A DNA stretch of 64,000 bases from Selaginella moellendorffii (Eukaryota > Plantae > Lycopodiophyta), in the NCBI RefSeq assembly GCF_000143415.4, contig NW_003314367.1, forward strand, positions 248,001 to 312,000, written 5' to 3'. Made by a program: the position numbers and the translations under genes. This document shows, piece after piece, positions 4,917 to 61,714 of the stretch. Under the pieces are notes generated by a model, which was not told the DNA's origin, did not search any database, and was given only the letters and a program-made list of their open reading frames with translations. The first letter of the stretch is position 1. The number at the start of each line of letters is the position of its first letter.

Positions 4917-5530
4917 CTACTGATCATTGAACCAGCAGGAGCGCCACTTACCCACCACTGTGCTCTTTGCACACGACTTGACCAAGCCATCCAAACCCTG
5001 ATCCAGTATTTTAAAAGCCGCACAACGTATTTTGGAGGCTGGGTTGTGATCTCGATTGCTGATGTTTCTGCGACTTAACAAATGCTTACCTGATAGAGGG
5101 ATGTGGAACAGTCGATCATGACTTGGTTGTGGGCTGCTATAAAATCCTGGAGCAGGAATGGGATCCATTCGTGCAGCAGTGAGGGAGGATTTGCAAGCGA
5201 TCCATGGTGCATTGAAGGAGGATGTGGTTGCCATGGCTAGAGCAGTGAATGTTGCGGTTATGCGTGCTGCAATCAAGGAGGACCTCCAGGCACTTCATGA
5301 CACAGTGAAGGAACCACAGCAACATCTTCCTTTATGGCACTATGGATTATTGGCAAATCCTCCCTCACTGCCGCACGAATGCCAGAGGCCATCACCTGGA
5401 GATTCTCAGTCACAGCTCCCATTCCTGCACGCATGGCAGATGCCAGCACCAGCACACAAGCTGTGGTCACGATGCACAGCACACTGATCACAATGGTGCT
5501 AACAAGCACCATCGCAATCAGAAACTCCAT
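4917..5530 (-). pseudogene. TM-CC orphan gene type A, copy disrupted by an internal 165-bp inversion (5148-5312)
   Basis: N-terminus MEFLIAMVLVSTIVISVLCIVTTACVLVLASA is on the minus strand, while the repeat block MGSIRAAVREDLQAIHGALKED..TVKE is on the plus strand. Compare the intact copy at 46732-47350. Confidence 0.85.
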
Positions 5531-5986
5531 TGGTAGGGTTTGCAGCAAAACCTTAGTAAAATCGAGAACGAAATAAGGTTTGCAACAGCTATGAAAGACG
5601 CAAATGACACTCTTACCAGAAGTTCGAGCCGCCTGCCCTATCTTCGCAAGAACCCTAAGCTAACGGTCGCTTTATCTTACATACAATGGGCCACTGGCCA
5701 CTTTCTTGGTGGGCCGCCATTCGTACAGTGGTCTGGCGGGAACTCGAGTTCCTTGTGCCACGATCAGTGGATTCTCGCGATTTCTATCAGTACACGGGCT
5801 CGATGACAAGAGGAGGAGGAAGAGGAGGAGGAAGAGGAGAAGGATGGCACTCCATCTCCTCGACTTCTTTCATCCTCATGGTTTTCCATCCTCGGACTGA
5901 TCTCGTGTTTGACAATGTAGATGGATGTGTAAGGAAAATGTTTCTTTTCTTCGTTAACTAAGACCTCGAGAAAATTCTTACAAAGC

Positions 5987-8900
5987 TCACATTTGCAGTG
6001 CCTCAGAGAAGCGTTCTCTCAGCCGCTCCACCTTGAGCACCGACGAATGCTGCTTCCCAAAATATGTCCGGAAGTTGTCGATCAGTATCCTAAGATCGTG
6101 TGACACCGCCATCACGCTACGCTACGATAATAGTTGTTCTCCAGCCGCTCGCGAATCACGTCCATGGAGATTGGCAGCGCAATCCTGCATTGTTTGAAAA
6201 CCTTTAGCTTCTTTCTCAATCGCAAGAGATTTTTCCAACTTGCCTGTCAAGAAAATCCGGCTTGCTCACGGCCTGCTGCAACCTCCACAAGCCATACTCG
6301 TCCTGTGAAAAGCAAAAGCTCGTCAAGCCAAGACCAAAACCAAAACATTCCTCGAGTCTATGATCGATCGCACAAAAACAAACCTTGGATTGGTTCGAGT
6401 GGAGCACCTCGTCCACGATGTCGAGCAGCTCACGCACCTTGTCCTGCTCGATCTGTGGCGACTCCCAAGTTAAAGGATTCTCAACGTCGTGAAGCTCCCA
6501 GGGGCAGTGGTTCGTCGTCGATGGCTCGTCCTTGTACAGCACACTGATGCTGTCCCTGGGGCTGTTTGGAAACTCGGGCGACTTTCCCTTCACCTGAGTT
6601 ATCGTCCCTTCCCACCAGCGACCACCTTCTTCCTCGTCCGACCTCCACCACACTTGGCACTTGTCCCGACTGGACCACTTCCTGGCCATGGAGGCCTCGT
6701 AGCGGCTTCTCTCCACTATAAAGTCGGCGAAGTCTGTCAGCTCCGGCAAGTCGACGCTGAAGCTGCTGCCGCGAATCCTGTACCCGTCCATAAACTCAAG
6801 AGTCAGCCGGCAACAAGTGTTCCCCGACACTTCGAGAATGATGTACTCCAGTCCAGTGATCTCGCAGAACTCGACCACTTGCAGTTCCCTTTTCACGCTT
6901 CTCCAGGGACCATCGTCGTCGAGCCGCTTGTTGTCTAAGTAGTCTTGATGTCCCTGCGATCGACAGTTTCAATTCAAACATAATTCAAGACAAGCTCGTT
7001 GGATCTCTTACCTGTCGGAAGTACACCACCTCATCACCATACTGTGGGATGTAGCGCGTCCGCTCCACCTCTGTCAAGAGTAACCAGGACACGTTGCTCG
7101 GACTCCGATGCACCGTGCTCAGGTTTCTCCTCACGTGGAAATCCTTGTACCTCGACCCAACGTTCTTCTGCAGCTTCACTTTAAGTCTGCTCGAAGTTCT
7201 TCTTTCGGGCTTTCGGCGTCCATCGTCGTCGCTGCTTCTATCCCAGTCCGAGTCGTCGTAAGACGAGCTAGCTTCCCAGTGTGAGGGACGGCCGACGTTT
7301 CTCCTGCTTCTTGTGGACCTGCTGTTGGAGAGACTAACCACGCGACCCTGCGCCAGCCGTGTACTTCTCCTGCGGCCACCTGAAGCGTGCTCGTCGGCCT
7401 CATAACACTCGGTCTTAGTCGCAACTTTGCGAGGCCTTCTCCTTGAGTAGACGGCCTTGTTCATATTGCGCTTCATTTGTATATCGTCCACGTCCAGGTC
7501 CTCACTTGCCTGCTCTTCCTCGGGCTTGTAAGCATCCTCCAGCGACTCACTGTTACTGCCTGGTGAAACCTCTTCGTGGTAATCAGGGTCATTGTCACCA
7601 TCTGGAGCTTCTCCATTCTGTAAGGACTCAATGACAGTCATCCAGAAACAGATGGTTTTATCGCGGACGAGAATCCCACTGAAGCTGTTTCGTCTGACGA
7701 CAAACAGGGATACATATGGAAGAAGGGGAAAGCAGCCAAGCGTGCTCGCATGCCTTATCACAGCAGCAGCAGCTCGGAAGAGGATAAACTGGTAGACGTT
7801 CCTTGTGATACCAAGGAAGGTCTTGAAGCGACTCGTGTAGAAAATGGAGACACAAAGGTGGTGGCAAGGGCGATCATTAGCGAGTCCGAGTCGGAGAGGT
7901 CTCTTTCAGCTGACTACCTTGACGAACAGCAGAGACGAGAGCAGAATCACACTCTTATGAGCAATAGCCTCGGCCACGGGGACTTTAGAAGTGCCTTGTT
8001 CTGGTATTTCGAGGCTCTGAAAAGTATCCTCGTTGTTGGACGTTTGTGCACAGTTTCTCAACTTGAGTACTAACTTTCGCTGAGACCTTGGCCGCCTGCA
8101 TTTACCCACGTCCGAAGTCTCTGCGGGACTCTTCTTCAGAGGTTCATCGTCTTCACGTTCCTGAGTTTCTGTAAGAACTTTCCCGTTGCGTAGAAGCCTC
8201 TGGTTCTCGTTCTCTCCAGATGTACCAGGTCTTTTGGCATCCTCAGCGGCCAGGCGGCGTGCTCCGTCGTCTTCGTACTCATGTAAGCTCGAAAACATGG
8301 TCAAGGCATTCCAAGCTGCCATCCTCATAGGCCTCAATGCATGGTCCGTGTTTGACTTTCTTATCAGACCTCAATATCTGTGTTTCCTCTCTCCTTTAGT
8401 TTCCTCATCGGCATCAAAAGTGCATTGTATGACTCCTCCAAGCGCCAGCGCTTTTGCTTCCTGACCAAGGTCGCAAGTATCTGTAATGGATTATCAGAAA
8501 CACAAAAACTTCACGTACATACCTCTCTCCTTCTTTGGGTACGAACCACTTCAGAATCTAATTCGTCATTTTCTTTGTCGGTTGTTTCTGATTCACAGAT
8601 CGTACCACTTTCTTCATTTCCATCCTCGTCACTCAAGAAACTGGGATAAAGAAGTCACCGGCTTGAGTGACGAGTCTGGTTCTGACTACTGCGCGAGCGA
8701 AGAAAGCTCTCCGCCGGTTGTTCTACCCATCTGTTGCCTTGCTTGTTTGTTTGCTCAATCGCTTGCAGAGAAGAAACTGAGGCTTATCCTGAGGAATGAA
8801 AGCTGGATCATCAAACGTTCCCACTGCGAGCTGAACTGATGGTGGTTGCCAGTAGCAACCTAGGAGTCCCAGACGACGTTGCTGGTACGAGCTTTGATAA

Positions 8901-10910
8901 GGTTCTGGATAGGGAATCAAGCCTGAAAATGAAACAGAAAAATAAGTTGGCCGAGGTAAGAAGTCACCAGCTTACTTGCATCGCACAAGAGATCTTGAAG
9001 ATTCCTTTGATGAGGAGGCAACCGAGTTTCCTGTTAAAGAAAGACATTCAGTTCGCACAAGAATAATACCGGACAGGAACAACACTCAGGACTAAAACTA
9101 AATAAAAGCACTTACATCATTTTATTTGACTGATCGAGAACGTTTCCATCCAAGAAAAAACTAGAAAAAACAAAAATAATAAATAATAAATGCAAAAACA
9201 ACAAGCTATTGGATGAAAGATAAAAAGCAAAATCTTCCTGATACCTGATCGTATTACGCACCTTCGTCGTCTTGACTACCAACGAGGTTCCATCCCTGAA
9301 AATTAGCAAACGTGAAATCCAGGATAAATGGATATGAGAGCAAGCATACGGTGAAAATTGTCATCGACAAGATTATAATCTCCAGTCTCATATGTTCTTA
9401 CTGGATGGCCCTGCCAAATCTAAAACAATCAAGTGATATTCGTCATCATTCTTTTGAGCGAACACACTTACATCCCAGACAGTACCTCTGCCATCGTAGC
9501 CCGGACTCATTGCAATATGAGGATTGCATGGATGTACATCTGGCACGTAAGTCTCGGCAATCTGCACATCCGTGTTATTCCATGAGAGCCCCATAAGATG
9601 TCTTTACCTTGTCATCCTTGAAAAAGTCGACGGAAGAAACTTTGATTGGCTCTGCACAACCACTGGAACAAAGGACGATTGATGTCAACAAAGACGCGAA
9701 CCTGAACTGCATGTAGTTAACTTCTTGCGTCCCAAACCTGTTCAAACAATTGCTAGAAATATAAACAGTCCACTTTTAATGCTTACCCTGGCAAGCTTGT
9801 CCGAATTCCCAGTGACGAAATATGATCCATCTGCATTAAACGCACAGAACTGAATCTGATTCGTAGCCTGTGCTCCATTCTCAGCTCCTGCAGCTGGAAA
9901 CAAGCTTTTAGAAGACCAGAAAAACATCGGCAGACTCTTTACATTCGGGCTCGCCATCCGGCTTCGGCATGTAGACACGTGAATTGACAGAGGTTCCGTC
10001 TTCAGGTCGGGGACTAAACTTGATGGCCGTTACGTGGTCACGAAGTGTTGCAACCGGAACACCATCTGGTAATCCACTAAAGGCAGAAGCAAAACGAATC
10101 AAAACAAAAAACAGGAGGAATCGTCAGAAGCTGATGCAACTAAAGTGGAGGTTCCTACTCTTTCGGGATCAGGAGCATTCTCGCTTTTGGAATGTAAGCC
10201 TTGTCTTTTCGAATATTGCGGTTGCTGATCCGAGCAAACTACTGGCAGCGAGCAAAGAAATGCTACAAGTATCTCTACGAAGCGAATAGAACAAATGCAT
10301 TGGCAAGCTGACCACATGCTCTCGAACTTGGTGGTGGATTTGCAATGCATCGCAATAGAAAATAGGCTTCGCCTTTGTAGCTGCGGAGGTTTGGACTATG
10401 CAAGAACTTGGCTGGCTGGCTGGTTTCGATTACTGTGCTTAAAAACCTGGCTTTTTTGTGGGAGGTAGCCGATTTGTCTGTAAGTAGTTCGAACGCGGCG
10501 GTTAATTGCTTGGACACTTTCGCATCACGCGAACACGCAGTTGCTGCAAGAGCTTGTTGCCAACGTTCTTACACCTGCAAATCATCTTCTTGTCAACATG
10601 GAAAACCAATAAAGAGCTTCGCGACACACAGTACCTCGGCAACTTGCGCCTCGCTGAGTGGGAACGACAAACATCGTCATTTTCATCAGCGGTGGGCGTC
10701 CCATTCCTGGAGAAAAATTCAAGGTACCTCCGGGGCAAGAACTTGTGCTGTAGGAACTCGTTCCAGGGCTGGCCAGTGGCTCTCTCGCAAGGGCCGCGAC
10801 TCAGGAAATGCATGATAAAGAAATGGAGATCACCTCGATCTCCTCGTTCAGCTCTCTATGTTTCAGGTCCAGTGAGTCTGCACGAGCCGTCAGCTAAGCT
10901 GCATGAACCC
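5987..10910 (-). pseudogene. BRWD/PHIP-like gene type B, unit 1 (many deletions, three micro-inversions)
   Basis: WD40 fragments; MIPYPEPYQS.YQQRRLG; YIPQYGDEVVYFRQ; Tudor-like WWEGTI..HCPWEL; bromodomain PISMDVIRERLENNYYR (5-bp duplication at ~6120). Confidence 0.9.
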
Positions 10911-11215
10911 GAGTCTACTTGAAGACAGAAAACTTGAAAGCTTTGATTGAATCGTGTTCCGTTATCATACAAAGCAATTGAAGTGTACCCAGTGAAATCC
11001 GGGTCTGCTGAATAAACAGTTACACTGATCCACCTACAAGGAAGTACTATTAGACACTGCCAAGCCACGTCCATGTCTATGTTCTTGCCCGGAAAAGACT
11101 TACTATCAGAAGCTCAAGACATGAGTCATTTTATTTCGAGGAAACGAAGATCCGAATCAGAAGCTTTTTCCCTGTCGAAAAACAAAATAGTTTTGTCGAA
11201 CTTCCTATGAATCAA

Positions 11216-11650
11216 CTACTGATCACTGAACATGGTCAGCAGCAGCAGCGCCACTTCTGTGCGGTTTGCACACCACTGGATGATCAAGCAAATAATTTCA
11301 AGATTCGCACAAGCCAGAACTTCACAAATGCTTACCGGATTAGCTTGGCCCTGGGCTGCCTCAGCTCGCAGAGCATTTCGCAGCATCCTCAGTTCCTCCC
11401 TCAAGGCACCAAAATCCTGTATCACCTGCCTGAGGCTGGGAAGGTCCGCCTTGAGAACTCCACGGAGAGCCTGCAGATCCTCCTTGAGAGCTCCACGGAG
11501 AGCCTGTAGATCCTCCTTCGCTGCTCCCCTGGTTGAAGAAGCCATGGTAATGACGCTCTTGGGGAGGAGGTTGATGATGAGCATGGTTGCAACGCAAGTT
11601 GCCGCAATGACAACACAAGCACCCGCGACCGCCACAATCACAACATCCAT
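11216..11650 (-). CDS. TM-CC orphan protein type B (N-terminal hydrophobic helix plus 11-aa repeats KEDLQALRGAL), unit 1
   Basis: Open 144-codon frame. Probable in-frame 60-nt intron (donor gtaag after ANP at ~11335) would give ~124 aa. The ORF is open in all three units. Confidence 0.6.
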   Translation of the reverse strand: MDVVIVAVAGACVVIAATCVATMLIINLLPKSVITMASSTRGAAKEDLQALRGALKEDLQALRGVLKADLPSLRQVIQDFGALREELRMLRNALRAEAAQGQANPVSICEVLACANLEIICLIIQWCANRTEVALLLLTMFSDQ

Positions 11651-11706
11651 GGAAGCTGCGGAGACGACGAACCCTAGATTTTACATGGAGGGAAAATTTG
11701 CTCACC

Positions 11707-12681
11707 CTAACCTCGGGCAGCCCTTCTCCGAAATTTGCTGCAATCCGGGAGCAAGATCTGCGAGAGAGGTCCTGCCAGGATTTTCTGCGCTGCCTTGGTA
11801 CAAGCTCGTATAGCTTGGACCTTTAAAGCCTCCCGCTCCCCTTCCAAGCGACGTGATCGATCTTCTGGCAGAAAAGCTCGGAGAACAGCGACAGAAGAGA
11901 AGCGCGAGGCCAATCCACGTCGGGAGAAGCGGTCCCCGATGGTTCCACTCGATTTGGAGGCGGCGGCGAGGCTGCCTGGCTGCCCTGATTTCGGCTTGGG
12001 CACCTCTGCAAGATCATCGCGCATGACATCCTCGTCGCCGTCAATCTGTACCTCCTGTGGAGGCCTCGCCCTGGAGAAGAGCTCTTCTTTGTTGTCGGCA
12101 CTGCCGGCTCCAGCACTGGCTCTGGCCGTGGCGGCTTGCTCCTCCATTTCCATGGCTTCCACCGTCTTACCTTTCCTCGCGCGGTGGCGCGGCGCGACGG
12201 CGTCTCCGGAGCTGGATTGGCGGCAGGAATCGATGCTGCTCTTGTGCCACGGGCGTGGATTCTTCCCAACGGCAGTGGGCCGGAGGCGCTGGATATCTTC
12301 CTCCGCGGGCGCATTCTCGGGAATCTTGATCTTGTCCTGGTGATTTCGCGAGGAGCTGTGGATCTTGGCGCCGGCGTGGTGACTCCGCGAGGTTTTGTGG
12401 CCAGAGTAGGAGCAGCGGATCGATCCAGGACCAGGACAGGATTTCGTCCTCTTGTTCCTGGCGGGGGATTGCTGGTGCCAGGGGTGATCGCCGTCGGCTT
12501 CCGGATCGAAGGGGAGCTCACGTGGCCTCGACGACAAGAGAAGGAGGGGGAGGAAGAGGAGAAGGATGGCACTCCATCTCCTCACTCGATCCTTGGCAGA
12601 TCTCCAAGCCCTGTTGGAGCTCCACAGGAAAGCAGCCACATAAAACACGAAGGAGGAACAGCTGTGATACCTTGGATTCAC
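11707..12681 (-). other. Orphan GC-rich ORF ('ORF-X'), 3'-truncated, function unknown
   Basis: 324-codon ORF. Paralogs at 36032-37007 and 59229-60475 are frameshifted. No recognised domain. Confidence 0.35.
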
Positions 12682-13039
12682 AGTGAGTTTCTTTCTTCTC
12701 TATTCCTTTATTTGGCCTCTCCAAGCCCTGCAAAGTGGAGAAAGCGTTGCGTGCGTGGAGCAAAAACTAAAACCCAGCAGTGGTCAACCCTCGACTTGAA
12801 AACGAGAACCTCTGGCTCAGCTTCGAGAGCAAGAGCTCCGATCCGATCACTGTTTTTCTTGGTGTTACGTATAATCGCCATTTTTCCAAAGAGGTCCTTT
12901 AATTCCTTTATTTGTTTGGCTCCAAGGGGAGTATCATGGGAGCTCTAGAAAGAATTACAAGCTTTCATACTTAAACCGACTCAAAGCTTTCCAGGTATAA
13001 AAAGATCCTCCCAACTCGGGACAAAAGGTGTGCTCGTGA

Positions 13040-13460
13040 ATGCTCGTAGTCACTGCGAAGTCTGTCAGCCGGCAAGTCAATGCTGAAGCTGTTGCCGCGA
13101 ATCCTGTACACGTCCATAAACTCGAGAGTGAGCCGGCCCAACACTCCGAGAATGTACTCCAGTTAGGTGATCTCGCAGAACGCTCGGAGTTCTCACCCTT
13201 CCATCGTCGTCAAGCTAGTGTTGATGTCCCTGCGATCAGTTTCAATTCAAACATAATTCAAGGCAAGCTCGTTGGATCTCTTACCCCACTTACCCACCTT
13301 GCGCCTTGATCAAGTATTTTAAAATCCGCACAAAATCAAAATTTAACAAATGCTTACATGATAGAGGGATGTGGAACACCATAATTTGGTTGTGGGTATG
13401 TCCTCTTTCAGTGTGCCATGAAGTGCCTGGAGGTCCTGCTTGATTGCAGCATGAATTGCG
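13040..13460 (-). pseudogene. Chimeric remnant: TM-CC 3' fragment fused to an internal BRWD (Tudor-region) exon fragment
   Basis: 13040-13290 matches 6720-7010 (FCEIT.LEYI..LTLEFMD.YRIRG). 13290-13460 matches the TM-CC intron and 3' end. Paralogs at ~37367-37790 and 60490-61270. Confidence 0.75.
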
Positions 13461-13599
13461 GAAGTCATGACTGCAGTATATGTAAGATTATAAACTTAAA
13501 TTTTAACAACAAACAAACTCAAATCTTTGTGATTGATGGATGAATGAAGAAAACGCTAACATAACCATTAGCATATAGCTATTACTCTCTAGTGTTTGT

Positions 13600-13657
13600 G
13601 TGAATGAATGAATGAATGATAGGATTGAATGAATGGATTGAACGAATGAATGAATGA
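13600..13657. repeat. Imperfect (GAAT)n microsatellite
   Basis: gtgaatgaatgaatgaatgat... Paralogs at ~37935-37990 and ~61410-61472. Confidence 0.9.
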
Positions 13658-13770
13658 TAGCAAAACTTGTTAACAATAATAGGAGGCGCAGGAAGGAATT
13701 CATTTGCGAATTATCCTTACCTGAAACTCTCTCCCTCCTCATCCTCCTGCCGCACCGAGCAAACTAAAAA

Positions 13771-13824
13771 GCGCTCTTAGTTCAGTCCGGTAGAACGCAG
13801 GTCTCCAAAACCTGATGTTGTAGG
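13771..13824 (+). tRNA. trnW-CCA: 3'-truncated plastid-type tRNA-Trp(CCA) pseudogene
   Basis: GCGCTCTTAGTTCAGTCCGGTAGAACG, anticodon arm CAGGT-CT-CCA-AA-ACCTG, then ATGTTGTAGG. Breaks off before the T-loop; no 3' acceptor strand. Confidence 0.85.
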
Positions 13825-14039
13825 ACTTTAAGCATGTTAGCTACGTAAAGATTACAAAATTTTAAATATTTTATTGTGGAAAGTCAATAAGATTCCAAAG
13901 TAGTATATTTAAGATTTTGTAATCCTAGTTTTAATGTCATTTGCCTGAAAATCTGAGAGGACTTAACTCATGTCGTCCGGGAAATAAGTTTGAAAATTTC
14001 CCACTATAGTTCTCACTGAAATGTTCAAACCCTATTTCA

Positions 14040-16024: not shown

Positions 16025-16057
16025 CGATCTTGTACAGCGCTAGCCTACAGCTTCTAT

Positions 16058-16731
16058 CTAAACTGGTTTTGCGACTTCCATATCAACAATCCGGCTTGTT
16101 TCGTCGGTGCTCGTTTTCTTCTTCGGTTTCTTCATGCCGCTCATGTAGACGGACAAGTAGGCAATGCTGAGCAGCAAAGTGACGAGTGTAAAAGCAGCAC
16201 CCACAACACTCATGCCTTGCAGAACAGTGCTGCAACCAGATTCTTCAAACCTTTCCACTTGATAACTACTGAGGCTGGCCGCCGTGTTCAAGAAGAGCTC
16301 AGCGATCACCGGCCGTTACCACAAAAGTTGATCTTTTAAATAAATGATTTTTATTTTTTTTTGCTGAAAATACCAGGAAAGAGTGAGGAGGATAATTGCA
16401 GCAATCTTGCATCCGCGTCGATGAAGCGACGAAGACCAGCAAGTGCATTTTGTGGCGGCTGTGGCGGTGATTTGGCCGAGAAGCAAACACACAGCAGCTC
16501 CGATAGCTAAGCCGCTTGCTACCCCTCCTCTCTTGGGAGTGCATCAGATTCTGGTGTGATCAGATGAAATCTCGTCTTGAATGGTTTCCTACAGCCAGAA
16601 AACGTGAATTCAAGGGCGAAGTGAAGGCGGCTTACATGATAACTTGTGGACGAAGAACCGACTGAAAGGCCGAACGCGAGGAGATCCAACGCAAATGTAA
16701 ATGCAGCAGCGGGATAAAGAGATAGCCTCAT
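16058..16731 (-). pseudogene. DUF1218 (MWL-like) membrane protein pseudogene, unit 1
   Basis: Same gene as 40404-41076 but with TGA in exon 2 (~16546) and a deleted exon-3 acceptor (~16310). Confidence 0.7.
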
Positions 16732-19652: not shown

Positions 19653-19796
19653 TCACGTGGACTCATTTCTGGTACCACGTGTTGCGGCTGCCCTCTCAAG
19701 CAGCCTCGACTCGGAGCTTCTATTTTACCAACTTTCGAGCTCAGATTATTAACCGCGCGCGACTTTAGGTTTAACACATTTTAGAGGTTGGCGGCT

Positions 19797-21047: not shown

Positions 21048-21082
21048 AAACTTAGAAATGTGAATATCATATTAGTCCCTCA

Positions 21083-21977: not shown

Positions 21978-22342
21978 GCTCCTCGATCACGCATCAGAGG
22001 TAACATTATCAGAGGTAACAGCAGCGACAGGAACAGCCAGCCACCAAGCCAACTCCATTCGGAAATAAACTGTTAGAGAATCCTCGAAAAGCGCACAAAT
22101 ATCACATGTTCCTCTACCATACAAAGCAATTGAACCCAGTGACTATCGGCAGCTCCAAAGGGTCTCATCCACCTACAAGAAAGTACTAATTAGACACTGC
22201 CAGGCCACGTCCATGTCTATGTTCTTGCCCGGAAAAAGACTTACTATCAGAAGCTCACGACATATAAGCCTTTTTATTTCTGCAGATCCGAATCAGAAAA
22301 AAAATTCCTGAGAAAAAAGAGATCAGTTCGTCGTTTCTATGA

Positions 22343-22845
22343 ATCACTGAACCAGCAGCAGCGCCACTTTGCGCTTTGGACACGACCTGATCAAGCCATC
22401 CAAACCCTGATCCAGTATTTTAAAAGCCGCACAAAATCTAGATCTGACAAATGCTTACCTGATAGAGGGATGTGGAACAGTCGACCATGACTTGGTTGTG
22501 GGCTGCTATAACATCCTCCTTCACTGTGTCGTGAAGTGCCTGGAGGTCCTCCTTGATTGCAGCACGCATAGCCGCAACGTTCAGTGCTCCAACCACAGCA
22601 ACAAAGTCCTCCTTCAAGGCACCATGGATCTCCCTCACTGCTGCACGAATGGATCCCATTCCTGCTCCAACCATGGCAACAACGTCTTCCTTTATGGCAC
22701 CATGGATTGCTGGCACATCCTCCCTCACTGCACCATGGATCGCTTGCACATCCTCCCTCACTGCCGCATGAATGCCGGAGGCCATCACCTGGAGATTCTC
22801 AGTCACGGCTCCCATTCTTGCACGCATGGCAGATGCCAGCACCAT
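22343..22845 (-). pseudogene. TM-CC type A, copy lacking the N-terminal TM helix and start
   Basis: Un-inverted AVREDVQAIHG repeats. A deletion at ~22843 joins VLASA directly to upstream non-coding DNA. Confidence 0.8.
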
Positions 22846-29190: not shown

Positions 29191-29527
29191 CCGAGTCTAC
29201 TTGAAGACAGAAAACTTGAAAGCTTCGATTCAATGTTCCGTTACCATACAAAGCATTTGAACCCAGTGACTATATGCGATATCCGCAGCTCCAAAGGACC
29301 TCCTGAATAAATAGTCTCCTGAATAAATAGTTACACTCATCCACCTACAAGGAAGTACCAATTAGACAATGCCAGGCCACGTTCATGTCTATGTTCTTGC
29401 CCGGAAAAAGACTTACTATCAGAAGCTCACGACATATAAGCCTTTTTATTTCGAAGAACGAAGATCCGAATCAGAAAAAAATATCCTGAGAAAAAAAAAG
29501 AACAGCTTTGTCGTTTCTATGAATCAA

Positions 29528-30091
29528 CTACTGATCATTGAACCAGCAGCAGCGCCACTTACCCACCACTATGCTCTTTGCACACGACTTGATCAAGCCA
29601 TCCAAACCCTGATCCAGTATTTTAAAAGCCGCACAAAATCTAGATCTAACAAATGCTTACCTGATAGAGGGATGTGGAATAGTCGATCATGACTTGGTTG
29701 TGGGCTGCTATAACATCCTGGAGCATGAATGGGATCCATTTGTACAGCAGTGAGGGAGGATTTGCAAGCGATCCATGGTGCATTGTTGCCATGGCTAGAG
29801 AAGTGAATGTTGCAGCTATGCATGCTGCAATCAAGGAGGACTTCCAAGCACTTCACGATACAGTGAAGGAACCACGGCAACAACGTCTTATTTTATGGCA
29901 CTATGGATTGTTGGCAAATCCTCCCTCACTGCCGCACGAATGCCAGAGGCCATCACCTGGAGATTCTCAGTCACAGCTCCCATTCTTGCACACATGGCAG
30001 ATGCCAGCACCAGCACACAAGCTGTGGTCACGATGCACAGCACACTAATCGCAATGGTGCTAACAAGCACTATGGCAATCAAAAACTCCAT
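29528..30091 (-). pseudogene. TM-CC type A with internal inversion (29719-29870), unit 2
   Basis: Same breakpoints as 5148-5312, plus a 13-bp deletion. Confidence 0.85.
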
Positions 30092-35540: not shown

Positions 35541-35975
35541 CTACTGATCACTGAACATGGTCAGCAGCAGCAGCGCCACTTCTGTGCGGTTTGCACACCA
35601 CTGGATGATCAAGAAAATAATTTCAAGATTCGCACAAGCCAGAACTTCACAAATGCTTACCGGATTAGCTTGGCCCTGGGCTGCCTCAGCTCGCAGAGCA
35701 TCTCGCAGCATCCTCAGTTCCTCCCTCAAGGCACCAAAATCCTGTATCACCTGCCTGAGGCTGGGAAGATCCGCCTTGAGAACTCCACGGAGAGCCTGCA
35801 GATCCTCCTTGAGAGCTCCACGGAGAGCCTGTAGATCCTCCTTCGCTGCTCCCCTGGTTGAAGAAGCCATGGTAATGACGCTCTTGGTGAGGAGGTTGAT
35901 GATGAGCATGGTTGCAACGCAAGTTGCCGCAATGACAACACAAGCACCCGCGACCGCCACAATCACAACATCCAT
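35541..35975 (-). CDS. TM-CC orphan protein type B, unit 2
   Basis: Open 144-codon frame, near-identical to 11216-11650. Confidence 0.6.
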   Translation of the reverse strand: MDVVIVAVAGACVVIAATCVATMLIINLLTKSVITMASSTRGAAKEDLQALRGALKEDLQALRGVLKADLPSLRQVIQDFGALREELRMLRDALRAEAAQGQANPVSICEVLACANLEIIFLIIQWCANRTEVALLLLTMFSDQ

Positions 35976-36031
35976 GGAAGCTGCGGAGACGACGAACCCT
36001 AGATTTTACATGGAGGGAAAATTTGCTCACC

Positions 36032-50800: not shown

Positions 50801-53800
50801 CACAAGAGATCTTGAAGATTCCTTTGATGAGGAGGCAACTGAGTTTCCTGTAAAAGAAAGATACTCAGTTTTTGCAAGAACAATACCGGAAAAGAACAAC
50901 ACTCAGGACTAAAACTAAATAAAAGCACTTACATCATTTTATTTACCTGACCGAGAACGCTTCCATGAGTATCTAGAACAAGAGGCCGATAATCTCCAAG
51001 AAAAAACTAAACAAAACCCAAACAAACAAACAAACAAAAAGCTGTTAGGAGAAGGATCTGAAGCTAATCTTCCTGATACCTGGTCGTATTTCGCATCTTC
51101 GTCGTCTTGACTTGGTGGTGCTCCCGTAGAAAAAAGGTAGACCTGGCCGACCTCATCGGAAACAACCAATGAGGTTCCATCCCTGAAAATTGGCAAACAT
51201 GAGAACAGTATATGGATATGAGGTGAAAAGTTGCCATCGACAAGATTATAATCTCCCATCTCAAATGTCCTTACTGGACGGCCCTCCCAGATCTAAAACA
51301 AAATTCGTGATCTTTTTTTTGAGCGAATACACTTACATCCCACACAATAACTCGGCCATCGTAGCCCGCACTCATTGCAATGCGAGGATTGCATGGATGT
51401 ACATCTAGCACGTAAGTCTAAATAATAGATGTTAAGAAAGAATGGAATCAATAAATTCCATTCAATACCTGTTTGGTATGGCCAGTTAAACAGTGCACCA
51501 GCCTGCCATCAACCGCATTCCAGACACATATCCGGCAATCTGCACATCCATGTTATTCCATAAAATTAGTTCGTGAGGTATCTTACCCATAATCGCGGCG
51601 AGTACAAAACGATTGTCCAAACTCCAGATTATCATATTGACACCTCGAGGAGTCGGAAGTAGTTTTTGTCGAGGTCCACCAGTTCGAACGGGAGGCTGTG
51701 GCATCGGAGGGGGCGGTACTTTCAAATGATAAGCTTTCACCCATCGACCTAGCTTCAGCTGGAGGAAAGAGGAGAAGTCATGGCATTAGTTACACAGAAA
51801 GAAAGGCCATGCACACCTGTTTTCTAGGACGAGGAGACCAGATAATAGCAGTGCCGTCTCTTGAGCAAGTAACTATGCTATCTTGAGGAAACCTGAACAA
51901 AACCAACGTTAAAACCAGATAGCAATGAGCGGCACAGTATACCAGGTTGTTTTGAACTTCGGTATGTTGTCAGGGACGTTGTCATCCTTCAAAAAGTCGA
52001 CGGGAGAAACTTTGATTGGCTCTGCACAACCACTGGAACAAAGGACGATTGATGTCAACGAGGACCAAGCCAAAGAGGCGAACCTGAACCACACGTAGTT
52101 AACTACATTCTCGTGTCCACTAAGAATGTCATGCTCATGATTTGGCCTGCCGGTGTACTCGTCCGCCCACTTTCTTGCGTCCCAAACCTGTTCCACAATT
52201 GTTAGAAATATAAAAAGTCCACTTTAAATGCTTACCCTGGCAAGCTTGTCCGAACTCCCAGTAACAAAGTATGAGCCATCTGCATTAAACGCACAGCACT
52301 GAATCTGATTCGTAGCCTGTGCTCGATTCTCAGCTCTTCTCAGCTCCTGCAGCTGGAAACAAGCTTTTAGAAGACCAAAAAAACATCGGCAGACTCTTTA
52401 CATTCGGGTTCGACATCCGGCTTCGGCATGTAGACACGTGGATTGACAGAAGAATCCCGAGCATCCATGTTCCGTCTTCAGACGAACTTGAAACCACGAG
52501 ATTTTAATACAAGTGGAAAAACCAAATTATTAACACTTACGATAGAAGATGGTGCTCACAGCCCGGTCGAGGACTAAATTTGATGGCCGTTACGCCCGCG
52601 GTGTGGCCACGAAGTATTGCAACGGGAACACCATCTGGTAATCCCCACTAAAGGCAGAAGCGAAATAAATCAAAAGAAGAAACAAAAATACAACAAAGGA
52701 ATACTTACAACACGGATGGAGGAATCGTTAGAAGCTGATGCAACTAGAGTGTTCGAACTACTTACAGACAAATCGGTTATATCCCCCAAAAGCCAGGTTT
52801 TAAGCACAATATTCGAAACGGATGCAGAAAATAGTACCTCGTGTCCTCTACAGCTACGAAGGCAAAGTCGATTTTCTACGGACCATATCTTCACAAGCCG
52901 ATCGTCCGAGCCAGTGACAAGATACCGTCCAGTACGATAAAAAACGGCTGCACGTTTATCGCTTCGTTAATAGGTCTTGAAAATCAAAAAGAAAAGAAAC
53001 ACGTACCACAATATACCGCATTACGATGACCCCTTCGCACCTGGATGATTCTTATTCGGTTCACCAGTACAGAAGGCTTGATGATAACATGTTTCACAGT
53101 CCGTGTGGATGGCGGTCTGTGATGCTTTGCAAATCCACCACCAAGTTCACGGAACGCGAGAGCATGAACTTGGTCAGCTTGCCAATGCGGCCATCGCATT
53201 TGTTCTATTCTCTTGGTAGAGATACTAGTAGCATTGCTTTACTCCGCTGTATGAAGTTTGCTCGGATCAGCAACGGCAAGATTCGAAAAGTACACGGCTT
53301 ACATTCCAAAAGCGAGAATGCTCCTGACCCCAAAAGCGTAGGAACGTCCGCGGCGGTCAATTGCTTGGGAACTTTCGCATCAAGCAAGGACGCGGACTTG
53401 TCGTGAACAAGTAGTTGCTGCAAGAGCTTAACCAAGTGGTTGTTGTCAACGTTCTTATATCTGAAAATCGAAAAAAAAAAATCCATCCTTTTGTCAGCAA
53501 GACAAACCAAAAAAACAAAGAACTTAGCGACACACAATACCTCTCGGCAACTTGCGCGTAGCTGAGTGGGAACGACAAGCCATCGTCATTCTCGTCGGCG
53601 GGGGGCGTTCCATTCCTGATGGTACCTCCGGGGCAAGAGCTTGTGCTGTAGGAGCTCGTTCCAGAGCTGGTCAGTGGCTCTCTCGTAAGGGCCTCTCCTC
53701 AGGAAGTGCATGATAACTTCCGCAACTCGATCTCCTCGTCTTGTTCATGCAGGTGATGATCAGCTCCAACATCAGACCGTAAAGCCACGAACGTTAGTCA

Positions 53801-53835
53801 GTCTGCACGAGAGGTTAGCTAAGCTGCATGAAGAT
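47817..53835 (-). pseudogene. BRWD/PHIP-like gene type A, near full length, second copy
   Basis: As 23138-29190. Own lesions: 13-bp deletion at ~48222, 12-bp deletions at ~47967 and ~48921. Shares the exon-1 frameshifts. Confidence 0.9.
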
Positions 53836-54161
53836 TGCACCCGAGTCTACTTGAAGACAGAAAACTTGAAAGCTTCGATTCAATGTTCCGTTACCATACA
53901 AAGCATTTGAACCGAGTGACTATATGCGATATCCGCAGCTCCAAAGGACCTCCTGAATAAATAGTTACACTCATCCACCTACAAGGAAGTACCAATTAGA
54001 CAATGCCAGACCACGTTCATGTGTATGTTCTTGGCCGGAAAAAGACTTACTATCAGAAGCTCACGACATATGAGCCTTTTTATTTCGAAGAACGAAGATC
54101 CGAATCAGAAAAAATTTTCCTGAGAAAAAAAAAGAACAGCTTTGTCGTTTCTATGAATCAA

Positions 54162-54719
54162 CTACTGATCATTGAACCAGCAGCAGCGCCACTTACCCAC
54201 CACTGTGCTCTTTGCACACGACTGGATCAAGCCATCCAAACCCTGATCCAGTATTTTAAAAGCCGCACAAAATCTAGATCTAACAAATGCTTACCTGATA
54301 GAGGGATGCGGAATAGTCGATCATGACTTGGTTGTGGGCTGCTATAACATCCTGGAGCATGAATGGGATCCATTTGTGCAGCAGTGAAGGAGGATTTGCA
54401 AGCAATCCATGGTGCATTGTTGCCATGGCTAGAGCAGTGAATGTTGCAGCTATGCGTGCTGCAATCAAGGAGGACCTCCAAGCACTTCACGATACAGTGA
54501 AGGAACCACAGCAACAACGTCTTCTTTTATGGCACTATGGATTGTTGGCAAATCCTCCCTCACTGCCGCACGAATGGCCATCACCTTGAGATTCTCAGTC
54601 ACAGCTCCCATTCCTGCACGCATGGCAGATGCCAGCACCAGCACACAAGCTGTGGTCACGATGCACAGCACATTAATCGCAATGGTGCTAACAAGCACTA
54701 TAGCAATCAAAAACTCCAT
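54162..54719 (-). pseudogene. TM-CC type A with internal inversion (54353-54504), unit 3
   Basis: Same inversion breakpoints as in units 1-2. Confidence 0.85.
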
Positions 54720-55192
54720 TGGCAAGGTTTGCAGCAAAGCCTTTGCAAAATCGAAAATGAAATCAAGTTTACAGTAGTTATGAAAGACACAAATGACACT
54801 CTTACCAGAAGTTCGAGCCGCCCGCCCTATCTTCGCAAGAACCCTAAGCTAACAGTCGCTTTATCTTACGTACAATGGGCCACTGGCCACTTTCTTGGTG
54901 GACCGCCATTCGTACAGTGGTCTGGCGGGAACTCGAGTTCCTTGTGCCACGATCAGTGGATTCTCGCGATTTCTATCAGTACACGGGCTCAATGACAAGA
55001 GGAGGAGGAAGAGGAGAAGGATGGCGCTCCATCTCCTCGACTTCTTTCGTCCTCATGGTTTTCCAGGTATAAAAAGATTGAGAGTGATCCTCGGACTGAT
55101 CTCGTGTTTGACAATGTAGATGGATCATGGATGTGTAAGGAAAATGTTTCTTTTCTTCATTAACTAAGACCTCGAGAAAATTTTTACAAAGC

Positions 55193-58100
55193 TCACATTT
55201 GCAGTGCCTCAGAGAAGCGTTCTCTCAGCCGCTCCACCTTGAGCACCGACGAATGCTGTTTCCCAAAATATGTCCGGAAGTTGTCGATCAGTATCCTAAG
55301 ATCGTGTGACACCGCCATCATGCTACGATAATAGTTGTTCTCCAGCCGCTCGCGAATCACGTCCATGGAGATTGGCAGCGCAATCCTGCATTGTTTGAAA
55401 ACCTTTAGCTTCTTTCTCAATCGCAAGAGATTTTTCCAACTTGCCTGTCAAGAAAATCCGCCTTGCTCACGGCCTGCTGCAACCTCCACAAGCCATACTC
55501 GTCCTGTGAAAAGCAAAAGCTCGTCAAGCCAAGACCAAAACCGAAACATTCCTCGTGGTTCGAGTGGAGCACCTCGTCCACGATGTCGAGCAGCTCACGC
55601 ACCTTGTCCTGCTCGATCTGTGGCGACTCCCAAGTTAAAGGATTCTCAACGTCGTGAAGCTCCCAGGGGCAGTGATTCGTCGTCGATGGCTCGTCCTTGT
55701 ACAGCACACTGATGCTGTCCCAGGGGCTGTTTGGAAACTCGGGCGACTTTGCCTTCACCTGAGTTATCGTCCCTTCCCACCAGCGACCACCTTCTTCCTC
55801 GTCCGACCTCCACCACACTTGGCACTTGTCCCGACTGGACCAGTTCCTGGCCATGAAGGCCTCGTAGCGGCTTCTCTCCACTATAAAGTCGGCGAAGTCT
55901 GTCAGCTCCGGCAAGTCGACGCTGAAGCTGCTGCCGCGAATCCTGTGCCCGTCCATGAACTCGAGAGTCAGCCGGCAACAAGTGTTCCTCAACACTTCGA
56001 GAATGATGTACTCCAGTCCGGTGATCTCGCAGAACTCGACCGCTTGCAGTTCCCTTTTCACGCTTCTCCAGGGACCATTGTCGTCGAGCCGCTTGTTGTC
56101 TAAGTAGTCTTGATGTCCCTTCTTGATGTCCCGGAAGTACACCACCTCATCACCATACTGTGGGATGTAGCGTGTCCGCTCCACCTCTGTCAAGAGTAAC
56201 CAGGACACGTTGCTCGGACTCCGATGCACCGTGCTGAGGTTTCTCCTCACGTGGAAATCCTTGTACCTCGACCCAACGTTCTTCTGCAGCTTCACTTTCA
56301 GTCTGCTCGAAGTTCTTCTTTCGGGCTTTCGGCGTCCATCGTCGTCGCTGCTTCTATCCCAGTCCGAGTCGTCGTAAGACGAGCTAGCTTCCCAGTGTGA
56401 GGGACGGCCGACGTTTCTCCTCCTTCTTGTGGACCTGCTGTTGGAGAGACTAACCACGCGACCCTGCGCCAGCCGTGTACTTCTCCTGCGGCCACCTGAA
56501 GCGTGCTCGTCGGCCTCATAACACTCGGTCTTAGTCGCAACTTTGCGAGGCCTTCTCCTTGAGTAGACGGCCTTGTTCATATTGCGCTTCATTTGTATAT
56601 CGTCCACGTCCTGCCTGCTCTTCCTCGGGCTTGTAAGCATCCTCCAGCGACTCACTGTTACTGCCTGGTGAAACCTCTTCGTGGTAATCAGGGTCATTGT
56701 CAGCATCTGGAGCTTCTCCATTCTGTAAGGACTCATTGCTCATAGAGTGTGATTCTGCTCTCGTCTCTGCTGTTCGTCAAGGTAGTCAGCTGAAAGAGAC
56801 CTCTCCGACTCGGACTCGCTAATGATCGCCCTTGCCACCACCTTTGTGTCTCCATTTTCTACACGAGTCGCTTCAAGGCCTTTCTTGGTATCACAAGGAA
56901 CGTCTACCAGTTTATCCTCTTCGGAGCTGCTGCTGCTGTGATAAGGCATGCGAGCACGCTTGGCTGCTTTCCCCTTCTTCCATATGTATCCCTGTTTGTC
57001 GTCAGACGAAACAGCTTCAGTGGGATTCTCGTCCGCGATAAAACCATCTGTTTCTGGATGCTCATGATTTGGCCTTCCGGTGTACTCGTCCGCCCACTTT
57101 CTTGCGTCCCAAACCTGTTCCAACAATTGTTAGAAATATAAAAAGTCCACTTTAAATGCTTACTCTGGCAAGCTTGTCCGAACTCCCAGTGACAAAGTAT
57201 GAGCCATCTGCATTAAACGCACAGCACTGAATCTGATTTGTAGCCTGTGCTCGATTCTCAGCTCCTGCAGCTGGAAACAAGCTTTTAGAAGACCAAAAAA
57301 ACATCGGCAGACTCTTTACATTCGGGCTCGACATCCGGCTTCGGCATGTAGACAACTTGACAGAGGTTCCGTCTTCAGGTCGGGGACTAAACTTGATGGC
57401 CGTTACGTGGTCACGAAGTGTTGCAACCGGAACACCATCTGGTAATCCCCACTAAAGGCAGAAGCAAAACGAATCAAAACAAAAAACAGGAGGACTCGTT
57501 AGAAGCTGATGCAACTAAAGTGTTCGAACTACTTACAGACAAATCGGCTATCTCCCACAAAAAAGCCAGGTTTTTAAGCACAGTAATCGAAACCAAGGTT
57601 CTTGCATAGTCCAAACCTCCGCAGCTACGAAGGCGAAGCCTATTTCTACTGCGATGCATTGCAAATTCACCACCAAGTTCGAGAGCATGAACGTGGTCAG
57701 CTTGCCAATGCATTTGTTCTATTCGCTTCATAGAGATACTTGTAGCATTTCTTTGCTCCGCTGCCAGTAGTTTGCTCGGATCAGCAACGGCAAGATTCGA
57801 AAAGACAAGGCTTACATTCCAAAAGCGAGAATGCTCCTGATCCCGAAAGAGTAGGAACGTCCGCGGCAGTTAACTGCTTGGACACTTTCGCATCACGCGA
57901 ACACGCAGTTGCTGCAAGAGCTTGTTGTCAACGTTCTTACACCTGCAAATCATCTTCTTGTCAACATGGAAAACCAATAAAGGACTTGGCGACACACAGT
58001 ACCTCCGCAACTTGCACGTCGCGGAGTGGGAACGACAAACATCGTCATTTTCATCAGCGGTGGGCATCCCATTCCTGGAGAAAAATTCATGGTACCTCCG

Positions 58101-58516: not shown

Positions 58517-58951
58517 CTACCGATCACTGAACATGGTCAGCAGCAGCAGCGCCACTTCTGTGCGGTTTGCACACCACTGGATGATCAAGCAAATAATTTC
58601 AAGATTCGCACAAGCCAGAACTTCACAAATGCTTACCGGATTAGCTTGGCCCTGGGCTGCCTCAGCTCGCAGAGCATCTCGCAGCATCCTCAGTTCCTCC
58701 CTCAAGGCACCAAAATCCTGTATCACCTGCCTGAGGCTGGGAAGGTCCTCCTTGAGAACTCCACGGAGAGCCTGTAGATCCTCCTTGAGAGCTCCACGGA
58801 GAGCCTGTAGATCCTCCTTCGCTGCTCCCCTGGTTGAAGAAGCCATGGTGATGACGCTCTTGGTGAGGAGGTTGATGATGAGCATGGTTGCAATGCAAGT
58901 TGCCGCAATGACAACACAAGCACCCGCGACCGCCACAATCACAACATCCAT
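58517..58951 (-). CDS. TM-CC orphan protein type B, unit 3
   Basis: Open 144-codon frame; about 5 aa differences and no indels versus unit 1. Confidence 0.6.
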   Translation of the reverse strand: MDVVIVAVAGACVVIAATCIATMLIINLLTKSVITMASSTRGAAKEDLQALRGALKEDLQALRGVLKEDLPSLRQVIQDFGALREELRMLRDALRAEAAQGQANPVSICEVLACANLEIICLIIQWCANRTEVALLLLTMFSDR

Positions 58952-59228
58952 GGAAGCTGCGGAGACGACGAACCCTAGATTTTACATGGAGGGAAAACTT
59001 GCTCACACTAACCCTGGCTATGGCGGACAATTTTCTTAAAAATTGTTTAAAGAATCGCGTTTTTTTGTTTATTTGAGTTTTTAAAGACGAGCAGCAAAGA
59101 GTCTGAGCTCCACGAGATTGGGACAAGGAATCCAAACCCGTCCTCGGTCGCTCTGCGGCAAAAGGGCCTGACAAAGAACGAACGCTTTCACGCTTGCGAG
59201 CTTCCAGCGGCCGTGACGAAGTCCGCCA

Positions 59229-60475
59229 CTACCTCGTCACTGAGAAGAAAACAAAGCTTGTGTAAGTAGCAGATGAGAAGAAAGGCAGTAAAGATTCACC
59301 TGAGGTCCTAGTGCTGTAAGGTGACGTCTGTAAGCTCCAAGCCTTCGAAGTGCAAAGCTTTTCAGAGTAGAACAAACCGCAAGCTGCAACAGCCGCCACC
59401 GTAACGCTGCACAAAAAACGTCCAGCGGATCTCAGTAAGAAGCCAAAGCACCACAGACGGTTGGTTACCTGCAATTCGAGATACTGAGCTCCTCTAGTTT
59501 CGGCCCCATGGCCACCATGAGCTCGCTCGGTAATTCGTCGGTTCACGCTCGCGAGAGAAAGGGACGTCAGCTCGGGCAGCCCTGCTCCGAAATTTGCTGC
59601 AATCCGGGAGCAAGATCTGCGAGAGAGGTCCTGCCAGGATTTTCTGCGCTGCCTTGGTACAAGCTCGTATAGCTTGGACCTTTAAAGCCTCCCGCTCCCC
59701 TTCCAAGCGACGTGATCCATCTTCTGGCGGAGAACAGCGACAGAGGAGAAGCGCGAGGCCAATCCACGTCGGGAGAAGCGGTCCCCGATGGTTCCACTCG
59801 ATTTGGAGGCGGCGGCGAGGCTGCCTGGCTGGGGACCCCCTGGCTGCGCTGACTTGTGTCATCCACGGGCTTGGGCACCTCTGCAAGATCATCGCGCATG
59901 ACATCCTCGTCGCCGTCAATCTGTGCCTCCTGTGGAGGCCTCGCCCTGGAGAAGAGCTCTTCTTTGTTGTCGGCACTGCCGGCTCCAGCACTGGCTCTGG
60001 CCGCGGCGGCTTGCTCCTCGATTTCCATGGCTCCGATTCGGCTTCCACCGTCTTACCTTTCCTCGCGCGGTGGCGCGGCGCGACGGCGTCTCCGGAGCTC
60101 CAACAGAGATGGCAGCCAGGGAGCCGGATTGGCGGCAGGAATCGATGCTGCTCTTGTACGGGCGTGGATTCTTCCCAGCGGCAGTGGGCCGGAGGCGCTG
60201 GATATCTTCCTCCGCGGGCGCATTCTCGGGAATCTTGATCTTGTCGTGGTGATTTCGCGAGGAGCTGTGGATCTTGGCGCCGGCGTAGTGGCTTCGCGAG
60301 GTTTTGTGGCCAGAGTAGGAGCAGCGGATCGATCCAGGACCAGGACAGGATTTCGTCCTCTTGTTCTTGGCGGGGGATTTCTGGTGCTAGGGTGATCGCC
60401 GTCGGCTTCCGGATCGAAGAGGAGCTCACGCGCATAAAACACGAAGGAGGAACAGCTGTGATATCTTGGATTCAC
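59229..60475 (-). pseudogene. ORF-X paralog with the longer 3' end, frameshifted
   Basis: Retains ~560 bp (59014-59571) that is missing in units 1-2. Confidence 0.35.
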
Positions 60476-61714
60476 AGTGAGTTTCTTTCGGATTTTAAAA
60501 TACTTGATCAGGGTCTGGATGGCTTATGTGCAAGGTGGGTAAGTGGCGCTGCTGCTGGGGTAAGAGATCCAACGAGCTTGCCTTGAATTACGTTTGAATT
60601 GAAACTGATCGCAGGGACATCAAAACTACTTGGACAGCAATCAGCTTGACGACGATGGAAGGGTGAGAACTCCGAGCGTTCTGCGAGATCACCGAACTGG
60701 AGTACATTCTCGAAGTGTCGGGCCGGCTCACTCTCGAGTTTATGGACGTGTACAGGATTCGCGGCAGCAGCTTCAGCATTGACTTGCTGGAGCTGACAGA
60801 CTTCGCAGACTATATAGTGACTACGAGATCATTCACGAGCACACCTTTTGTCCCGAGTTGGGAGGATCTTTTTATACCATTCTTTCTAGAGCTCCCATGA
60901 TACTCCCTCGGAGCCAAACAAATAAAGGAATTAAAGGTACCTCTTTGGAAAAGTGGCGATTCTACGTAACACCAAGAAAAAATCACGGGTGCAGCGGATC
61001 GGAGCTCTTGCTCTCGAAGCTGAGCCAGAGGTTCTCGTTTTCAAGTCGAGGGTTGACCACTGCTGGGTTTTAGTTTTTGCTCCGCTTTCTCCACTTTGCA
61101 GGGCTTGGAGAGGCCAAATAAAGGAATAGAGAAGCACAAAATCAAAATTTAACAAATGCTTACATGATAGAGGGATGTCCATAATTTGGTTGTGGGTATG
61201 TCCTCTTTCAGTGTGCCATGAAGTGCCTGGAGGTCCTGCTTGATTGCAGCATGAATTGTGGAAGTCATGACTGCAGTATATGTAAGATTATAAATTTAAA
61301 TTTTAACAACAAACAAAACTCAAATCTTTGTGATTGATGGATGAATGACACCTGAAGAAAACGCTAACATAACCATTAGCATATAGCTATTACGCTCTAG
61401 TGTTTGTGTGATGAATGAATGAATGAATGATAGGAAATGAATGAATGAATGGATTGAACAAATGAATGAATGATAGGAAAACTTGTTAACTTTAAGAATG
61501 TTAGCTATAAACAGATGTAAGATTACAAAATTTTAAATATGGAAAGTGAATAAGATTCCAAAATAATATATTTAAGATTTTGTAATCCTAGTTTTAATGT
61601 CATTTGTCCTGAAAATCTGAGAGGACTTATCTTGATCAACTCATGTCGTCCGGGAAATAAGTTTGAAAATTTCCCACTATAGTTCTCACTGAAATGTTGA
61701 AACCCTATTTCAAG

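Follow-up and report, generated by a model that had tools for sequence, protein, structure and literature searches.

A 64,000-nt stretch of the Selaginella moellendorffii genome (NCBI RefSeq assembly GCF_000143415.4, contig NW_003314367.1, positions 248,001 to 312,000; hereafter, the window) contains 11 elements of a membrane-anchored hendecad coiled-coil family, here called TM-CC, all of which lie on the minus strand: five copies of type A, three copies of type B, and three remnants of approximately 150 nt. The original prediction for this DNA, which was made from the letters alone, gave the same eight copies and three remnants at the same places. We consider TM-CC to be a real, young, partly decaying, and lineage-restricted gene family that would encode a headless, N-terminally anchored hendecad coiled-coil protein, and we assign this reading a probability of approximately 60%. 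The reading follows from the frame and architecture that types A and B have kept, from the structure of the array, from the matching RefSeq models of S. moellendorffii, and from the likeness of the repeat to known hendecads.

Architecture of the TM-CC genes

In both types, the predicted protein begins with a hydrophobic segment whose best 19-residue Kyte-Doolittle mean is 2.8 to 2.9, starting from residue 3. In the intact genes, this hydrophobic anchor is 29 to 42 residues long and is directly followed by a region of 5 to 9 hendecads, in which the repeats begin within approximately 10 to 15 residues of the anchor. The hendecads take the form [A/G]-[A/L/V]-[K/R]-E-D-[L/V]-x-A-[L/I]-x-G, and their hydrophobic residues are spaced 4-3-4, i.e., in the 11/3 coiled-coil pattern. 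The hydrophobicity autocorrelation of both types is highest at lag 11 (0.42 to 0.44), and Tandem Repeats Finder (TRF) detects 33-nt tandem units with 94 to 97% identity in types A and B. The two repeat motifs quoted in the original prediction, AVREDLQAIHG and ALKEDLQALRG, are both present, and the hydrophobic N terminus and 11-residue repeats that it described are confirmed by these three analyses. The repeats expanded through tandem duplication of the 33-nt unit. A perfect in-frame 27-nt tandem duplication was also detected by TRF in the part of A4 that codes for the membrane segment (47243-47304), where it lengthens the hydrophobic stretch to approximately 42 residues.

The intact genes are thus predicted to encode a small single-pass protein that consists of an N-terminal anchor and a hendecad rod. 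Basic residues after the anchor suggest that the helical rod is probably located on the cytosolic side of the membrane. The rod may either self-associate as a parallel hendecad bundle, which would resemble a stalk of the DUF1640/CCDC90B type without the head domain, or form an amphipathic 11-mer helix resting on the membrane, and a membrane-tethered oligomer or a lipid-surface binder is a sensible guess at its function. In the ESM Atlas, the B protein is modelled with a predicted local distance difference test score (pLDDT) of 0.79; its structural neighbours are generic long helices, and the atlas gave no match of at least 0.9.

Exon 1 ends at a donor whose exact 12-mer, GTAAGCATTTGT, occurs 11 times in the window and solely at the 11 TM-CC elements. 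The common intron position that had been proposed is therefore supported by an identical donor in every element, whereas the short tail proposed with it is not uniform, as its frame and stop differ among A1-type, A4-type, and B copies. In A4, the acceptor at 46795 gives a 20-aa tail and a total of 188 aa, and the acceptor at 46775, which is homologous to the B acceptor, gives a 43-aa tail. A 3' module of approximately 350 nt is common to the eight full copies; the remnants have the donor. Within the window, the best-conserved part of the module, a 99-nt block, occurs only at these eight copies, and a transposon origin of the module was rejected within the window for this reason. Reading the module as a microRNA or as a structured RNA was likewise rejected for now, since Rfam gave no match to the whole window or, in a permissive search, to the module, and the fold of the conserved block (z = -1.8) showed no convincing structure.

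Condition of the copies

Four of the eight copies (A4, B1, B2, and B3) are intact, and the other four (A1, A2, A3, and A5) are disrupted and are pseudogenes (Table 1). B1, B2, and B3 differ by 3 to 7 nt over the 375-nt coding sequence, and all have canonical GT-AG introns. The open reading frame (ORF) of A1 stops 85 aa after the ATG, and in A2, 276 nt are missing, among them the ATG and the membrane segment, and there is a further 12-nt in-frame deletion. The stops and deletions of A3 and A5 listed in the table were read after computational re-orientation of the inverted segment, which was done for alignment only. The inversion that A1, A3, and A5 share relative to A4 is one event that was inherited through a higher-order repeat. 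The remnants consist of the last two type-A exon-1 repeats, the donor, and approximately 60 nt of intron, followed by DNA that is related to an internal exon of BRWD, in agreement with the junction noted in the original prediction.

Two further features of the copies were observed. The inversion in A1, A3, and A5 creates 65-nt inverted arms that are 82% complementary (e.g., 5166-5230 and 5317-5381); a transcript of the inverted copies could fold on itself, and its sequence would match that of the intact A4. In addition, B3 differs from B1 and B2 (equivalent site, 11712) by the insertion of a 558-nt segment that is unique in the window (59013-59571) and lies 62 nt before the B3 start codon. The promoter-proximal region of B3, for which a RefSeq model exists, is therefore different from that of B1 and B2.

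Table 1. Positions of TM-CC elements and of two adjacent gene starts in the window
Feature	Position	Strand	Description
A4 exon 1	46847..47350	-	Sole intact type-A copy; 168 aa; hydrophobic N terminus, then ~9 hendecads
A4 3' module	46552..46846	-	Intron (donor 46846), acceptors 46795/46775, tail exon, AATAAA, 99-nt block 46552-46650
B1	11216..11650	-	Intact type B
B2	35541..35975	-	Intact type B
B3	58517..58951	-	Exon 1 58951->58637, 60-nt intron 58636->58577, exon 2 58576->58517; 124 aa
A1 (with 3' module)	4725..5530	-	Exon-1-like 5530->5090; 165-nt coding segment 5148-5312 inverted
A2	22157..22845	-	Exon-1-like 22845->22459; direct orientation
A3	29336..30091	-	Exon-1-like 30091->29661; inversion 29719-29870; two in-frame stops, 13-nt deletion
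A5	53970..54719	-	Exon-1-like 54719->54295; inversion 54353-54504; stop, 13-nt deletion, 6-nt deletion
Remnant R1	13304..13451	-	Unit-1 copy; joined to BRWD internal piece 12980-13180
Remnant R2	37631..37778	-	Unit-2 copy of R1
Remnant R3	61134..61251	-	Unit-3 copy of R1
BRWD-A first coding exon	10502..10813	-	Directly downstream of B1 module; PF25437 BRWD1_N, 33.5 bits (cutoff 27)
F-box gene start	45911..46363	-	Directly downstream of A4 module; PF00646, 31.4 bits (cutoff 20.5)

Database relatives

The only database proteins that closely match the ORFs of the window are three S. moellendorffii RefSeq models, LOC112342338, LOC112347829, and LOC112347826, each annotated as "uncharacterized protein"; a literature search for the three identifiers found no mention of them. 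LOC112347826 is identical to the 124-aa product of B3 after removal of the 60-nt GT-AG intron. In the searches, type A was represented by exon 1 and type B by the database protein P0003. A word-based protein search returned S. moellendorffii proteins only. A combined A and B profile gave 133 matches at E <= 1e-3 against 1.84 billion representative proteins, among which full-length relatives with both anchor and repeats number three within the species and none outside it. The best outside matches are a salamander paralemmin-3 (E 1e-25) and repeat proteins of nematode, chytrid, scallop, fish, and snail; the lower-ranked matches include many small prokaryotic proteins, one of which is named DUF1640 by its source. 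Of ten matches that were scanned against Pfam, two, both bacterial, passed the cutoff of PF07798, the DUF1640/CCDC90-like family.

For TM-CC itself, the Pfam scan gave only sub-threshold matches and the NCBIfam scan gave nothing. No transposase or other mobile-element family of Pfam matches TM-CC, and within the window the module has no occurrence beyond the eight copies; the match to a transposon ORF that the original prediction had named as an outcome that would speak against it was thus not found. On the other hand, the repeat closely matches the stalk of DUF1640/CCDC90-like proteins. PDB entry 6H9L ("uncharacterized protein"; three chains in the entry; ATKEDIEALRK repeats) aligns over 70 to 75 residues, with E values of 5e-9 to type B and 9e-6 to type A, and hhalign gives 97.5% for TM-CC against nine DUF1640-like matches, in the repeat region only. 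The PF07798 gathering cutoff of 33.5 bits is not reached by type A (11.8 bits, E 0.22), and type B gives no match. Because clearly unrelated animal proteins outscore the DUF1640 members, the likeness is one of repeats and does not prove common descent; homology should not be read from high HMMER scores to repeats of this kind, e.g., that of the salamander paralemmin-3. The description of TM-CC as an orphan is therefore right at the level of the family, which is so far restricted to S. moellendorffii, but not at the level of the repeat.

Organization of the array

Self-comparison of the window reveals a higher-order tandem repeat of approximately 24.4 kb, of which approximately 2.6 units are present: 7962-22844 and 32282-47244 are 96.2% identical over 15.1 kb, and 22841-30901 and 47520-55555 are 95.9% identical. 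Each unit has four TM-CC loci that alternate with BRWD genes. The order on the minus strand is B, BRWD-A, A-inverted, BRWD-B, A-direct, and F-box, and the remnant with its BRWD fragment lies further upstream of this series in each unit. In Pfam and tBLASTN searches, a BRWD C-terminal region is found directly upstream of all five A copies, and a BRWD1_N first exon is found directly after the module of every B and every A-inverted copy, i.e., after six of the eight modules; the paralogous BRWD starts after the A-inverted copies are at 4466, 29061, and 53711. The module of each A-direct copy is directly followed by an F-box gene. These positions bear out the earlier observation that the same linker of approximately 350 bp follows all eight copies and leads into BRWD or F-box genes.

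The homology between A-inverted and B copies runs past the linker, through the intergenic DNA, and into BRWD exon 1, which indicates that the ancestral duplicated unit was the gene pair [TM-CC + BRWD] and not the cassette alone. A tandem two-gene unit [TM-CC -> BRWD] formed first, and the block of approximately 24.4 kb that holds it was then copied approximately 2.6 times. Duplication of the pair and of the block explains the eight copies, the common 3' module, and the varying downstream genes, and the joining of the linker to different genes is a result of tandem duplication of the pair and one rearrangement that brought in the F-box gene. Ordinary tandem duplication accounts for the TM-CC copy counts. 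TM-CC had been called the most amplified gene of the array; since it alternates one-to-one with BRWD, it is co-amplified with BRWD and no more amplified than it, and its copies are not independent (four loci times approximately 2.6 units).

Coding constraint and alternative explanations

The protein identity between types A and B is 34 to 40%. In a DNA alignment made without protein guidance, the frame is kept at 259 of 304 aligned bases, and the identities at the first, second, and third codon positions are 0.75, 0.76, and 0.61, respectively; in a protein-guided alignment, they are 0.57, 0.65, and 0.37, and the ratio of nonsynonymous to synonymous substitution rates (dN/dS) is approximately 0.22 with a saturated dS, although repeat alignment inflates such codon-position and dN/dS figures. 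Both methods nevertheless find the lowest conservation at third positions, which argues for past purifying selection in the TM-CC frame. A dN/dS near 1 across the family, which the original prediction would have taken, together with a lack of expression, as a sign against it, is thus not seen between the types, but the recent ratios of nonsynonymous to synonymous differences (pN/pS) are mostly not separable from neutrality.

Several observations weigh against a functional gene family. Half of the eight copies are broken, and the tail exon is homologous DNA that is read in different frames and ends at different stops in A1-type, A4-type, and B copies. Other frames and the opposite strand contain long ORFs as well, as expected of GC-rich repeats. 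The pN/pS values are 0.35 to 0.94 among A copies, with most pairs indistinguishable from neutrality, and 0.3 to 0.9 among B copies, on very few changes. Relative to A4, the type-A RefSeq models P0001 and P0002 are N-terminally truncated and have the end of exon 1 in the +1 frame, and part of the P0001 repeat region is also translated out of frame. P0002 has no exact match to any copy in the window and, from the unit spacing, is probably the next A-direct copy past the window end. An AlphaFold2 monomer, calculated from a six-sequence family alignment, is all-helical with a pLDDT of only 47, and the oligomeric state is pure conjecture.

Taken with the lack of relatives outside the species, the broken copies, the shifting tail frame, the overlapping open frames, and the recent pN/pS values are what would be expected if the ORFs were non-functional, i.e., if a 33-nt minisatellite beside a hydrophobic-coding stretch had been passively carried along in BRWD duplications and then annotated ab initio as genes. 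We regard this explanation as unlikely, since types A and B keep frame and architecture although their third positions are the most diverged (0.61 vs 0.75; 37% when protein-guided), B1 to B3 are intact with canonical introns, and the consensus donor is identical in 11 of 11 copies. The divergence between the types is itself uneven. Between A and B, the protein-guided alignment gives 53% identity for exon 1 and a gapped DNA alignment gives approximately 70%, compared with 84% for the 3' module (Jukes-Cantor [JC] distance, 0.20 to 0.235), 92% for its 99-nt block, and 84 to 92% for the adjoining intron, 3' untranslated region, intergenic DNA, and BRWD exon 1. Because the homology extends on into BRWD exon 1, the outlier is the TM-CC exon 1 and not the module, and the idea that the module is anomalously conserved, through conversion or as a mobile linker, was dropped. 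Among A copies, exon 1 and the module are about equally diverged. The excess divergence of exon 1 between A and B may reflect fast evolution of the repeat exon, exchange of exon 1 through recombination near the intron, or conversion of the downstream part. A more specific and rather improbable proposal is a newborn, species-restricted gene whose exon 1 arose from the 33-nt minisatellite, converged on a DUF1640-type hendecad, and outpaced all neighbouring DNA after the pair duplication, either through diversifying selection on a membrane-tethered rod working with its BRWD neighbour or through recombination at the intron that swapped exon 1.

Two further explanations concern the origin of the array and of the protein. 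The original prediction saw the cassette as a core duplicon. Under such a mechanism, the cassette would actively seed, or be selected in, segmental duplications, and its 3' module would serve whichever gene lies downstream as promoter or first exon. Three different genes do have their start codons approximately 60 to 200 nt downstream of the module, and several rearrangements have an edge in or next to the cassette, namely the inversions, the deletion in A2, the remnants, and the 558-nt insertion upstream of B3. This mechanism is nevertheless very unlikely and is not needed, given that the A-inverted/B homology continues into BRWD exon 1, that BRWD C termini precede all five A copies so that the duplicated unit is TM-CC plus BRWD, that the module block is confined to the eight copies in the window, and that the module JC distance between A1 and A4 (0.09) is close to the exon-1 pS (0.08) and to the approximately 91% identity of the upstream BRWD DNA. 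Still less probable is that TM-CC is a true diverged homologue of DUF1640/CCDC90-like proteins or of bacterial proteins with an anchor and hendecads, derived through domain loss and a change of topology or through an old horizontal transfer. The string KEDxQALR recurs nearly letter for letter in bacterial DUF1640 repeats, the 6H9L and hhalign matches given above point the same way, and the metagenomic proteins P0021, P0032, P0035, and P0049 have the same layout as TM-CC. However, the best outside matches are animal and chytrid repeat proteins, so the scores stem from repeat composition; the PF07798 match is insignificant for type A and absent for type B; TM-CC has neither the head domain nor the ATK neck motif nor the C-terminal anchor; and the TM-CC genes have a spliceosomal intron and plant neighbours. 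A young, partly decaying gene family of this lineage thus remains our preferred reading.

Neighbouring genes and annotation

Other features of the array were also observed. In the BRWD 5' region of unit 3, a segment of approximately 340 nt (57522-57862) is inverted relative to 10147-10494 and 34467-34819, with 93 to 94% identity. The only clear plus-strand gene of the unit is an intronless 419-aa ORF at 44155-45414 with an archaeal-type ATPase/STAND NTPase domain (PF01637, 57 bits). Between the remnant and this ATPase lie, on the minus strand, a pentatricopeptide repeat (PPR) ORF at 38935-39594 (PF13041, E 7e-51) and an ORF at 40404-40898 with a weak DUF1218 match, both of which are carried in each 24.4-kb unit. 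A minus-strand 288-aa ORF without a Pfam match (36032-36898) ends 57 nt upstream of the B start codon; its copies are at 11710-12572 and 59569-60391, and the unit-3 copy is just 66 to 74% identical.

For annotation, the array is best described as a higher-order repeat of 24.4 kb that contains an ordinary tandem unit, [TM-CC + BRWD], and in which the protein can be encoded by only four of the eight copies and the RefSeq type-A models are built on damaged ones.

Comparison with known systems

The DUF1640/CCDC90-like proteins (PF07798; MCUR1, CCDC90B, and prokaryotic relatives) are, similar to TM-CC, small and membrane anchored with a run of hendecads, and their repeat motif, x-K-E-D-[IL]-x-A-L-R-x, and 4-3-4 spacing are nearly the same as those of TM-CC. 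By its lag-11 periodicity, its 33-nt repeats, the 6H9L alignment, and the hhalign comparison, TM-CC shares the hendecad coiled-coil stalk. The neck of the CCDC90-like family is formed by the beta-layer motif [aliphatic]-A-T-K-x-[DE] (PMC4786415). TM-CC has no N-terminal head domain and no ATK neck motif; L, V, I, or A is found at the equivalent position, so that the threonine of the DUF1640/CCDC90-like neck is an aliphatic residue in TM-CC. The anchor, which is C-terminal in the bacterial DUF1640 members found, is N-terminal in TM-CC. The head-neck-stalk-anchor layout of the CCDC90-like family is reportedly described by Adlakha et al. in 2019, the work from which 6H9L presumably comes.

The metagenomic prokaryotic proteins P0021, P0032, P0035, and P0049 have the same order of parts as TM-CC and a similar size, and in them an N-terminal membrane segment is followed by hendecads of the form [LV]-R-[TG]-E-[LV]-[KR]-E-[DS]-I-[SE]-x. 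Unlike TM-CC, these proteins are prokaryotic and intronless; they belong to no named family and are unstudied, and their similarity is one of composition and repeat only. Amphipathic helices of 11-residue periodicity are also found in the apolipoprotein A1/A4/E family (PF01442), to which TM-CC scores 17.4 and 19.6 bits (E 8e-4 to 4e-3), far from the cutoff of 90. Group 3 late embryogenesis abundant (LEA) proteins, perilipin, and alpha-synuclein are other lipid-surface binders with amphipathic 11-mer repeats. In contrast to TM-CC, these amphipathic 11-mer lipid binders have lysine-rich interfacial faces and no membrane-spanning anchor. If expressed, TM-CC would represent, in a plant, the headless and N-terminally anchored hendecad coiled coils that have so far been described mainly in prokaryotes and organelles, and it would be a tractable example of how a short tandem repeat can build a lineage-restricted gene. 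We regard TM-CC as a variant of the membrane-anchored hendecad coiled-coil theme that is restricted to this lineage and partly pseudogenised.

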